Source: Paramoeba atlantica | Taxonomy: Eukaryota > Protista > Discosea | Reading direction: 5' to 3' | Length of the DNA: 64,000 nucleotides | Assembly: GCA_977017575.1 (NCBI GenBank) | Contig: CDRNVI010000012.1 | Span: forward strand, 1,054,001-1,118,000 | In this document: positions 62,861-64,000 of the stretch, piece after piece | Numbering within the stretch: the stretch's first letter is position 1 | Layout of the letters: each line of letters begins with the position of its first letter | Made by a program: the position numbers and the translations under genes | The notes under the pieces: model-generated | What the model saw: the letters and a program-made list of their open reading frames with translations, nothing else | What the model was told of the DNA's origin: nothing | The model's database searches: none

Positions 62861-63343
62861 ATGAACAGTACAACTGAAGCTGCACCGGCCTTTCATTCGT
62901 CCAGACGCGGAAAAGTTACAAAGAGTGCTTTGCCTCTAGAATATTCTCTTTCTCGTTTCATAGAAAAAGTAGAAAATCCGCATTCCTCGTGGAAGGCAGA
63001 TAACCCAGCATGTGAGTGGAAAGGAGTGAAATGCGATTTCGGAGGACATTTGCTTTGCTTGGCTTGGGCTAACTATGGCTTGCTTGGGACACTTCTCTGG
63101 CATCATACTCCTCCGATACGAGGAAACTTTTTTGTACATTGTAATTCTTTGCAAGAAAATGTGGATTTGAGTCAACTGGAAGATGCAACAGAGCTGTGCA
63201 ATTTAAGTCACAACAAATTTCAAGGTATGATAGATTTTACGCAATTGCCATCAGGCTTGGATTCACTGTGGCTTTCATACAATGAATTCTCTGGAAAAGT
63301 AGATCTTACAGCCTTGCCCACTGGACTTCGATTGTTATTATAG
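62861..63343 (+). pseudogene. LRR protein (copy 10), 3'-truncated in mid-repeat
   Basis: SRRGKVTKSALPLEYSL, NPACEWKGVKC. The ORF ends LPTGLRLLL*, and the TAG falls inside the SL-like sequence. Confidence 0.75.
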
Positions 63344-63369
63344 ATACAGTTTCTGTACCTTGTTGGTAC
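63336..63369 (+). ncRNA. Spliced-leader mini-exon fragment (nt ~10-39) plus GT donor
   Basis: TATTATAGATACAGTTTCTGTACCTTGTTG|GTAC contains the invariant CAGTTTCTGTAC and the exact 30-nt spacing to TTG|GT. The 5' AACTAACGC is absent. Confidence 0.8.
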
Positions 63370-63374
63370 ATTTT

Positions 63375-63917
63375 GCTAGCCCTTCCTTTCTTTTCCCGGA
63401 AACGGGCATATTCTTACTTTTAAATGCCCGTTTCCGGCTGACGGCTAGCTGGAACTGTCCCTCTTTGTCGCGGAAGTAGGGGACGCACTTCGCACTCTTC
63501 ACCCCTCCCCGGCTCGCTCTCTTCGAGTGAGCTTTCTTCCCTCCCCGGCTCTCTACTTCTCGTGCTTTCTTCTCCCGGGAGCTATGCGCCATGGTGGCCT
63601 CCTTTGAGGACCACTGGGCGTGCTACAGCGGGAGGACACGTTGTATGCGTGTATAGGGGATGCGAACTTGCACCCCTCTCTCCCTACATGCTGTAGCGAG
63701 TGCGGAGGTAACGGACCTCCCCATGATGCATCATGATCCACGATAGACCATCTGACAGCATGAACCCACGGCTTGACCGTGTTGCAGCATGAACCATGGC
63801 TATACGTGCTGTAGCATGACCGATGGGCGACTCGTCTCCTACCTCGCACTCCACTCTCTGTGTGACACCCGTCGTATGCGGGTCATGCGCTGATGGTATC
63901 GGCCGTCACACAGAGAG
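63375..63917 (+). ncRNA. Unidentified highly structured RNA or retroelement UTR
   Basis: Multiple perfect stems, two three-way junctions with a shared loop and three AGCATGA-hairpin repeats (see findings). Confidence 0.55.
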
Positions 63918-64000
63918 ACGTATCTCTGCGCCACGAGCGTATGATCATAACCCTTCAAAATAACGTATTTTGTGGAACGCTAATTTTAAATTTTCTTCCA

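Follow-up and report, generated by a model that had tools for sequence, protein, structure and literature searches.

A spliced-leader-headed non-coding retroposon whose covarying 3' RNA modules probably serve as handles for R2-like reverse transcriptases

Introduction

Positions 63594-63917 of the 64,000-nt stretch of Paramoeba atlantica DNA analysed here (the window; GenBank assembly GCA_977017575.1, contig CDRNVI010000012.1, 1,054,001-1,118,000, forward strand) raise the question of what kind of RNA they encode and to what larger unit that RNA belongs. The first-pass annotation, made from the letters alone, had read the segment as an unknown multi-domain RNA in which two three-way junctions (J1 and J2) flank an array of AGCATGA hairpins, and had proposed either a new non-coding RNA or the UTR or ribozyme region of a spliced-leader (SL)-associated retroelement or SINE-like unit. 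The R2 protein binds its own 3' UTR RNA to prime reverse transcription at a nicked target, and the 5' RNA of R2 directs second-strand cleavage. R2 SIDEs are short, internally deleted, non-autonomous derivatives of R2, and some SINEs share the 3' end of a 'stringent' partner LINE, as in the eel pair UnaSINE1/UnaL2; a classical SINE, for its part, has a head derived from tRNA, 7SL or 5S and an internal pol III promoter. On the evidence presented here, the segment is the 3' half of a non-coding, SL-headed retroposon whose structured modules are probably recognition handles for target-primed reverse transcription. The host genome is kinetoplastid-type.

Results

The segment does fold better than shuffled sequence. 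For its 324 nt, ViennaRNA gives -143.2 kcal/mol (z = -5.65; none of 100 dinucleotide shuffles equals it), and the helices that had been proposed are all present in the sequence, at the coordinates given for them, as well as in the MFE and centroid folds, which contain both junctions and the long-range stem 63698-710/63840-851. J1 (63622-63697, + strand) consists of an outer 8-bp and an inner 5-bp helix, a hairpin A with the loop UUGUAUG and a hairpin B; J2 (63854-63917, + strand) consists of a 13-bp stem, a hairpin A with the loop UCGUAUG and a hairpin B. The first hairpins of the two junctions have the loop UYGUAUG in common and differ by an A-U to C-G change, as had been noticed. Each junction taken alone folds about five standard deviations better than its shuffles (z = -5.23 for J1 and z = -5.28 for J2, with 0 of 200 shuffles equalling either), and both are therefore real, non-random structures. 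The AGCATGA hairpin array was an over-reading: the motifs do lie at 63757, 63786 and 63813, but the region that contains them (63711-63839) folds at chance level (z = -0.72; 56 of 200 shuffles fold equally well), and we reject it as a structured domain. Tandem Repeats Finder identifies 63744-63826 (+ strand) as a degenerate repeat with a period of 27, 3.0 copies, 75% match and a score of 78, and the count of AGCATGA in the whole window is not above chance. The AGCATGA stretch is thus a short 27-nt tandem repeat with no demonstrable fold; it is partly common to a related subfamily (A2, below), in which one hairpin has a compensatory change.

The statement that the segment contains no ORF was nearly right, since only short, unconserved frames of at most 98 aa are present; the two longest have no Pfam match, and the element to which the segment belongs has no coding capacity of its own. 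No known RNA family accounts for it either. ARAGORN reported no tRNA or tmRNA, and Rfam gave nothing relevant at gathering scores on the whole window or at E up to 10 on 63300-64000, where the five weak hits are chance-level miRNA or sRNA models; the earlier impression that the segment resembles neither tRNA, 5S, 7SL nor hammerhead holds up in both searches.

The nature of the locus became clear from two public runs of the same organism (X1 and X2), whose contigs join window position 63339 directly to 63953 (1440 to 2054 in our extract L001). The joint skips 613 nt and has a single T between the flanks; the insertion at 63340-63952 (+ strand) has thus cost one target nucleotide and duplicated nothing. 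In the empty allele an LRR ORF runs in frame across the site, reading through ..LRLLFLQNNVFCG.. and encoding ..LPTGLRLLFLQNNVFCGTL.., whereas in the filled allele of the assembly the ORF, whose 5' part occupies 62861-63339 (+ strand) and which resumes at 63953, stops after 160 codons inside the insert. Because an empty allele exists and restores the reading frame, the insertion is young and polymorphic and has an intact empty site; 63594-63917 form its 3' half, and the whole insert is one copy of a non-coding retroposon subfamily that we call A. Insertions of the family favour one LRR-repeat position: the motif LxxNxFxG occurs within 66 nt in 23 of 74 downstream flanks, compared with 1.7% of random 90-mers. 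Other sequence has taken up copies too, a retrotransposon RT gene among it. The insertion studied here is not at the 28S rDNA target site, the flanks being LRR ORF. The same LRR gene carries a second, unrelated segment of 1057 bp that is absent from the X1 and X2 contigs (L001:2253-3309, 152-1208 nt past the window end); it has no SL head, has a CTCAC(C)AAT direct repeat at its flanks and ..ATACTCACAGCGA.. repeats near both ends, and the LRR ORF of the empty allele ends just inside it.

A search of the 45.7-Mb assembly (248 contigs) with 63400-64000 as query returned at least 47 matches at 97-100% identity on many contigs, most of them spanning the same ~553 nt, and exact J1 patterns occur 63 times in the genome. 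Copies start ..ATAAAGATACAGTTTCTGTACCTTGTTG and end ..GCGTATGATCATAACC, and the insert studied here has the tail ..ATGATCATAACC; nine matches begin 74-95 nt into the query and represent 5'-truncated copies. Flank comparison revealed neither poly(A) nor target duplication, and the copies have no terminal inverted repeats. Tandem stacks exist, in which a 5'-truncated copy lies directly behind the 3' end of another element. Beside subfamily A we distinguish the non-coding subfamilies B, C, D, E, F, G and A2, the last with at least 23 copies of ~735 nt. The subfamilies differ by many indels; their first ~290 nt and last ~90-100 nt can be aligned with one another, whereas the middle, which in A comprises J1 and the 27-nt repeat, cannot be aligned between A and B-G, and in B, C, E and F is a different unit of ~75 nt present once or twice. 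Some tails are lengthened by short repeats, with ATATCAT-type units behind A copies, (AT)n after the coding element M1, and (TG)n after the coding element M4 and a B copy (positions noted: the 3' tails in L011, L016 and L018, L042 8320-8350 and L070 about 960-1020).

The insert is therefore a member of a dispersed, young and polymorphic family of non-coding retroposons. The strong folding z-scores and the conserved structure would suit a non-coding RNA gene family with a host function, of which the repeats would be the gene copies. The copy studied here, however, destroys an ORF and is absent from other samples, while its relatives include 5'-truncated copies, occur in head-to-tail stacks behind other elements and are spread through coding sequence, with no Rfam family and no similarity to tRNA, 7SL or 5S. 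The empty allele and the behaviour of the copies exclude a cellular RNA gene, for which we see virtually no chance, and the first-pass proposal of a new non-coding RNA falls in that sense: the stretch is a multi-copy insert within a coding gene.

The 5' end of the insert reveals what kind of transcript was copied. Window positions 63340-63365 (+ strand) match the exon of the genuine SL RNA gene of this genome, which we read in L033/L034 and whose exon ends ..CCTTGTTG, followed by GTATGAGAAGC. The head of the element corresponds to the exon from nt 11 to its last base (nt 38), in this copy minus two A's. This genome does not contain the SL pattern that is canonical for trypanosomatids (AACTAACGC..). 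That the head could itself be an SL RNA gene unit was considered and rejected, the real gene being different before nt 11 and after the exon: it has AACTTTAACG ahead of the start of the relic and GTATGAGAAGC.. behind the exon, the element lacks both, and neither the complete exon (nt 1-38) nor the SL intron is present in the element. We compared 51 distinct 5' junctions: nt 11 is the exact starting point of 24, and nt 10 that of another 10. The modal junction at leader nt 11 coincides with the position at which CRE/SLACS/CZAR cut SL genes.

Genome-wide there are ~690 SL relics, of which 161 are followed by GTA and 528 by another base. In the window the relic is followed by a 14-nt piece of the form GTAC..pyrimidine..AG (63366-63379, + strand). 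Exactly these 14 nt, GTACATTTTGCTAG, are missing from four copies (L003, L005, L009 and L013), so that in them the relic is joined directly after the AG. On sequence grounds these A copies look like copies of a re-trans-spliced template, and the joining of the leader at the exon boundary in at least four lineages argues for trans-spliced templates more generally. Two hairpins complete the 5' domain. One, with a 14-bp stem (63396-63437, + strand), is kept in all non-coding subfamilies, with an A-to-C change matched by T-to-G in the opposite arm; the other, a small hairpin at 63594-63614 (+ strand) that forms in the 324-nt fold, is the last conserved piece of the domain and is kept in subfamilies A to E, G and A2. 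A pairing of the linker GUAUCU with AGAUAC of the SL relic was also tried; it holds in A and B and fails in C, D and the masters described below, and was rejected. The SL RNA genes themselves lie in tandem units with a period of ~2.6-2.9 kb (L033 and L034, the latter G000:C11:1-7400), and in each unit the SL gene is followed, 0.4-0.7 kb downstream, by an inverted C-like 3' module. Elsewhere (L036:537-600) a subfamily-A head of 61 nt, 100% identical, breaks into unrelated sequence and represents a truncated or interrupted copy.

The same leader heads autonomous elements. These masters, of ~4.9 kb, begin with SL nt 11-38 joined at the last exon base to 5' UTRs of their own, which differ from one another and are followed by long open frames. 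The ORF2 tested, an intact frame of 798 aa from master M2, matches RVT_1 at 1e-32 and contains a CCHC knuckle and a restriction-like endonuclease motif (..IIELTVPWEEN..K..KY); it aligns with solved R2 proteins over residues 42-748 (E 1.9e-33), and the R2 complexes matched by the master protein include 8gh6, 8ibw and 9dou (E 1e-28 to 1e-33). The masters are thus R2-like, combining a reverse transcriptase with a CCHC knuckle and a restriction-like endonuclease, and the genome holds more than 1800 RT candidates. On the minus strand of contig C1 (G000:C1:9751-25052) there is an M1-type master head every 5093 bp, which indicates that whole masters also occur in head-to-tail tandem arrays.

What links the non-coding elements to these masters is the 3' end. 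Window positions 63918-63952 (+ strand), although outside the annotated segment, belong to the same module as J2 and consist of a linker (..UAUCUC), a terminal 5-bp hairpin (63927-63941) and the tail UGAUCAUAACC. The layout of J2, linker, terminal hairpin and tail recurs in subfamilies B, C, D, E, G and A2 and in masters M1-M5. The covariation that had been proposed from two hairpins alone holds, and is much stronger across subfamilies. Between A and B all 13 pairs of the J2 stem are kept with four changed on both sides, while hairpin A shows a C-G to U-A change and hairpin B a U-G to C-G change. In the A-D alignment, 90% of cells pair (31-46% with slid partners) and 8 of the 29 pairs show a compensatory change, a count that 0 of 500 shuffles reach. 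Across 12 lineages, 92.3% of cells pair (28-44% slid) and compensatory changes affect 23 of the 29 pairs (7-12 slid), figures that lean towards the structure because this alignment is model-guided and fitted to it; the hand-checked helices are independent of it. Inspection by eye together with a pairing script defined a layout common to masters M1-M5 and all non-coding lineages, namely a stem around a hairpin that is closed by C-G and has the 7-nt loop UYNNNKG, often a second hairpin, a ..UCUC linker, a terminal hairpin and a YAUGA tail. The loops found are UCGUAUG, UUGUAUG, UUGUGGG, UUUUGUG, UCAUAUG, UUUUGGG, UUGAUUG and UUGAAUG, and the C-G closure extends to masters M1, M2, M3 and M5; exceptions are a 6-nt UCAAUA in B, a 5-nt loop in the A2 copy L084 and one of 9 nt in M4, where the closing pair also differs. 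The inner pairs of the terminal hairpin have seven different sequences, all of them complementary.

A covariance model built only from the non-coding subfamilies (R1) finds at least 150 copies above 84 bits and ~3000 candidates in the genome, and it recognises the module in sense at the exact 3' ends of M3 (35.8 bits), M2 (26.1 bits) and M5 (16.2 bits). The 3' end is thus held in common with autonomous, RT-coding partners as architecture and motifs, not as sequence identity, and this applies to all of M1-M5 in relation to subfamily A. On all four points tested, the insert behaves as a non-autonomous non-LTR retroposon of the SINE/SIDE kind that is mobilised in trans, and of the readings offered by the first-pass annotation it is the UTR of an SL-associated retroelement or SINE-like unit that agrees with the SL nt 11-38 head and the R2-like 3' architecture. 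Module hits also form long arrays; their period is 2556 bp on contigs C97 and C107, ~3.4 kb on C88 and ~5.2 kb on C65. In the one metagenome scanned with the terminal-hairpin pattern there was a single chance match, in an apparent bacterial coding region with no SL and no module.

Another suggestion is that a new self-cleaving ribozyme resides in either three-way junction and would trim the element RNA from a host co-transcript. HDV-like ribozymes are known at the 5' ends of R2 and L1Tc, the junctions are compact, conserved and covarying, and the element probably needs processing from read-through transcripts. Nevertheless, no Rfam ribozyme matches 63300-64000 at E up to 10, an HDV-like one at the 5' end included, and neither a covariance-model match nor a catalytic core was found for hammerhead, HDV-like, twister, pistol or hatchet ribozymes. 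The strands at the junctions are only 0-5 nt long and vary between lineages, with nothing like a hammerhead-type core; the modules lie at or near the 3' end, where cleavage would take off the conserved tail, and for the 5' end the spliced leader is explanation enough. A new ribozyme is quite unlikely in view of these short, variable strands and of a 5' end that is accounted for, and the ribozyme region of the first-pass proposal finds no support in the Rfam searches.

The first-pass annotation had favoured a + strand RNA from its G-U pairs. Taken alone these are not decisive and we reject them as a strand indicator, there being 13 GU and 11 AC cells across lineages, and the minus strand of 63594-63917 folds similarly well overall (z = -5.61). 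The + strand is established instead by the SL head, by the RT-coding masters, in which the module lies at the 3' end in sense orientation, and by the model scores of 105 bits in sense and 24 bits in antisense. The near-equal folding of both strands and the similar GU and AC counts might nonetheless suggest that the inverted repeats act in DNA, as cruciforms or hairpins for a DNA transposase or recombinase. Against this, the element is headed by a processed spliced-leader exon, J2 loses 4.2 kcal/mol of stability on the minus strand, there are neither terminal inverted repeats nor target duplications, and the 5' truncations together with the RT masters that bear the module at their sense 3' ends point to an RNA intermediate. 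In view of the masters, the processed leader and the truncations, we consider a DNA-level role very improbable and retain a function in RNA.

J1 differs from J2 in being internal. With J2 excluded and filters off, the best match of R1 within the element is 63622-63731, aligned end to end, a weak match of 10.9 bits (E 0.0066 for 518 nt). The alignment places J1 on the junction, GGAGGU/ACCUCC on the terminal hairpin and CCAUGAUG on the tail, and thereby delimits at 63698-63735 (+ strand) a relic linker, the hairpin GGAGGT/ACCTCC (63704-63720) and a CATGAT tail within the palindrome 63722-63735. Subfamily A2 has an equivalent internal unit (..AUUCUG, hairpin UGGG/CCCA, UGAUG) and a different 3' module of its own at its end. 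The J1 helices of A and A2, the two lineages compared, have entirely different sequences and the same architecture; RNAalifold recovers J1 as their consensus; two pairs of the outer helix have compensatory changes, and such changes also occur in the inner helix and in hairpin B. J1 with the following hairpin and CAUGAU tail is thus an internal second copy of the 3' module. It may be what remains of an ancestral 3' end that was later extended by a further 3' part, or else a protein-binding site of auxiliary function; we propose that the two-module composite could have arisen by read-through of a tandem stack.

This internal position invites the view that the junctions serve another step of the life cycle, with J1 binding the second protein subunit, which would direct second-strand cleavage, or else with the junctions acting in RNA stability, export or localisation. 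J1 is kept with compensatory changes between A and A2 in spite of being internal; B and C, which carry a different repeated middle, have no J1-type module, from which it follows that J1 is not essential for priming. J1 is, however, laid out like the 3' module, and the relic hairpin and tail that come after it give it the look of a fossil 3' end; we regard such another role for the junctions as unlikely. A recognition handle for reverse transcription remains the reading that we prefer.

Discussion

From the empty allele, the dispersed copies, the covarying structure and the architecture held in common with RT-coding masters emerges a scheme for the mobilisation of this element. The trans-spliced element RNA, with the leader at its 5' end, would be the template; a master protein would bind the J2 junction and the terminal hairpin; the tail would anneal or abut at the target nick, usually at one LRR-repeat position; and target-primed reverse transcription from the nick would run until cDNA synthesis reached the leader. 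The family shows a precise 3' junction, variable 5' truncation and no duplication. In one further run (X5), whose identification as RNA is a guess rather than a record, a single 153-nt contig covers the 3' end of the element, next to a different flank. That a protein binds the module, and that the module acts in priming, is suggested by analogy with R2; any role of J1 is more tentative. A bolder version would have J2 serve first-strand priming and J1 second-strand cleavage, one handle per protein subunit, the portable handle being sufficient to recruit the R2-like RTs of this genome; we hold this to be doubtful, but if true, a 600-nt non-coding RNA would supply both roles that R2 splits between its 3' and 5' RNAs.

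The analysis turns an orphan RNA into a defined, testable problem of RNA-protein recognition, in which the module is small, strongly covarying and common to several R2-like retrotransposon families and their non-coding riders in a free-living kinetoplastid-type genome. R2-type enzymes are under development for site-specific gene insertion, and natural minimal RNAs are therefore of practical interest. For genome biology, the family is young and polymorphic and breaks LRR genes, and its SL head shows that trans-spliced templates were used. New here are the anatomy of the 3' half, the covariation across 12 lineages and the recognition of J1 as a second, internal module, together with the downgrading of the hairpin array.

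R2 SIDEs and the SINEs of partner LINEs are the closest parallels. Like them, the element is non-coding, keeps the 5' leader and the structured 3' end of its master, and is probably copied in trans by target-primed reverse transcription; its copies, too, lack poly(A) and regular target duplications and can be 5'-truncated. Unlike R2 SIDEs, it has an LRR-coding repeat rather than 28S rDNA as target, and a spliced-leader relic rather than an HDV-like ribozyme at its 5' end; unlike both, its 3' module resembles that of the masters in architecture and motifs only, and subfamily A carries two such modules in tandem. It differs from a classical SINE in that its head is a spliced-leader relic, with no tRNA and no Rfam family. 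As in R2 3' UTR/protein complexes, a folded 3' UTR would be the element-specific handle for the RT, and the master protein is homologous; this likeness to R2 rests on the proteins compared, and we claim no homology of RNA folds.

The kinetoplastid elements in the literature are CRE/SLACS/CZAR, ingi/L1Tc, VIPER and TATE, and relict leaders are reported from dinoflagellate retrogenes; a leader-headed R2-type family with non-coding riders is not described in the open-access literature text searched. Elements of the CRE clade (CRE1/2, SLACS and CZAR) insert in SL RNA genes between nt 11 and 12, have a poly(A) end and produce target duplications (PMC12278014). The present family has in common with them the host group, the combination of RT and restriction-like endonuclease and the link to SL position 11, but here SL nt 11-38 are the 5' end of the element itself, insertion is into LRR genes, and there is neither poly(A) nor duplication. 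The relict spliced leaders of dinoflagellates belong to retrogenes that are each a one-off retrocopy of a host mRNA (PMC5585692). In both cases the DNA copy of a trans-spliced RNA keeps a 5'-truncated leader, and some copies here likewise look re-spliced at the AG just behind the relic. In contrast to those retrogenes, the leader here heads a self-propagating family together with its masters, and the insert at 63340-63952 is a non-autonomous rider that mimics the 3' end of its LINE.
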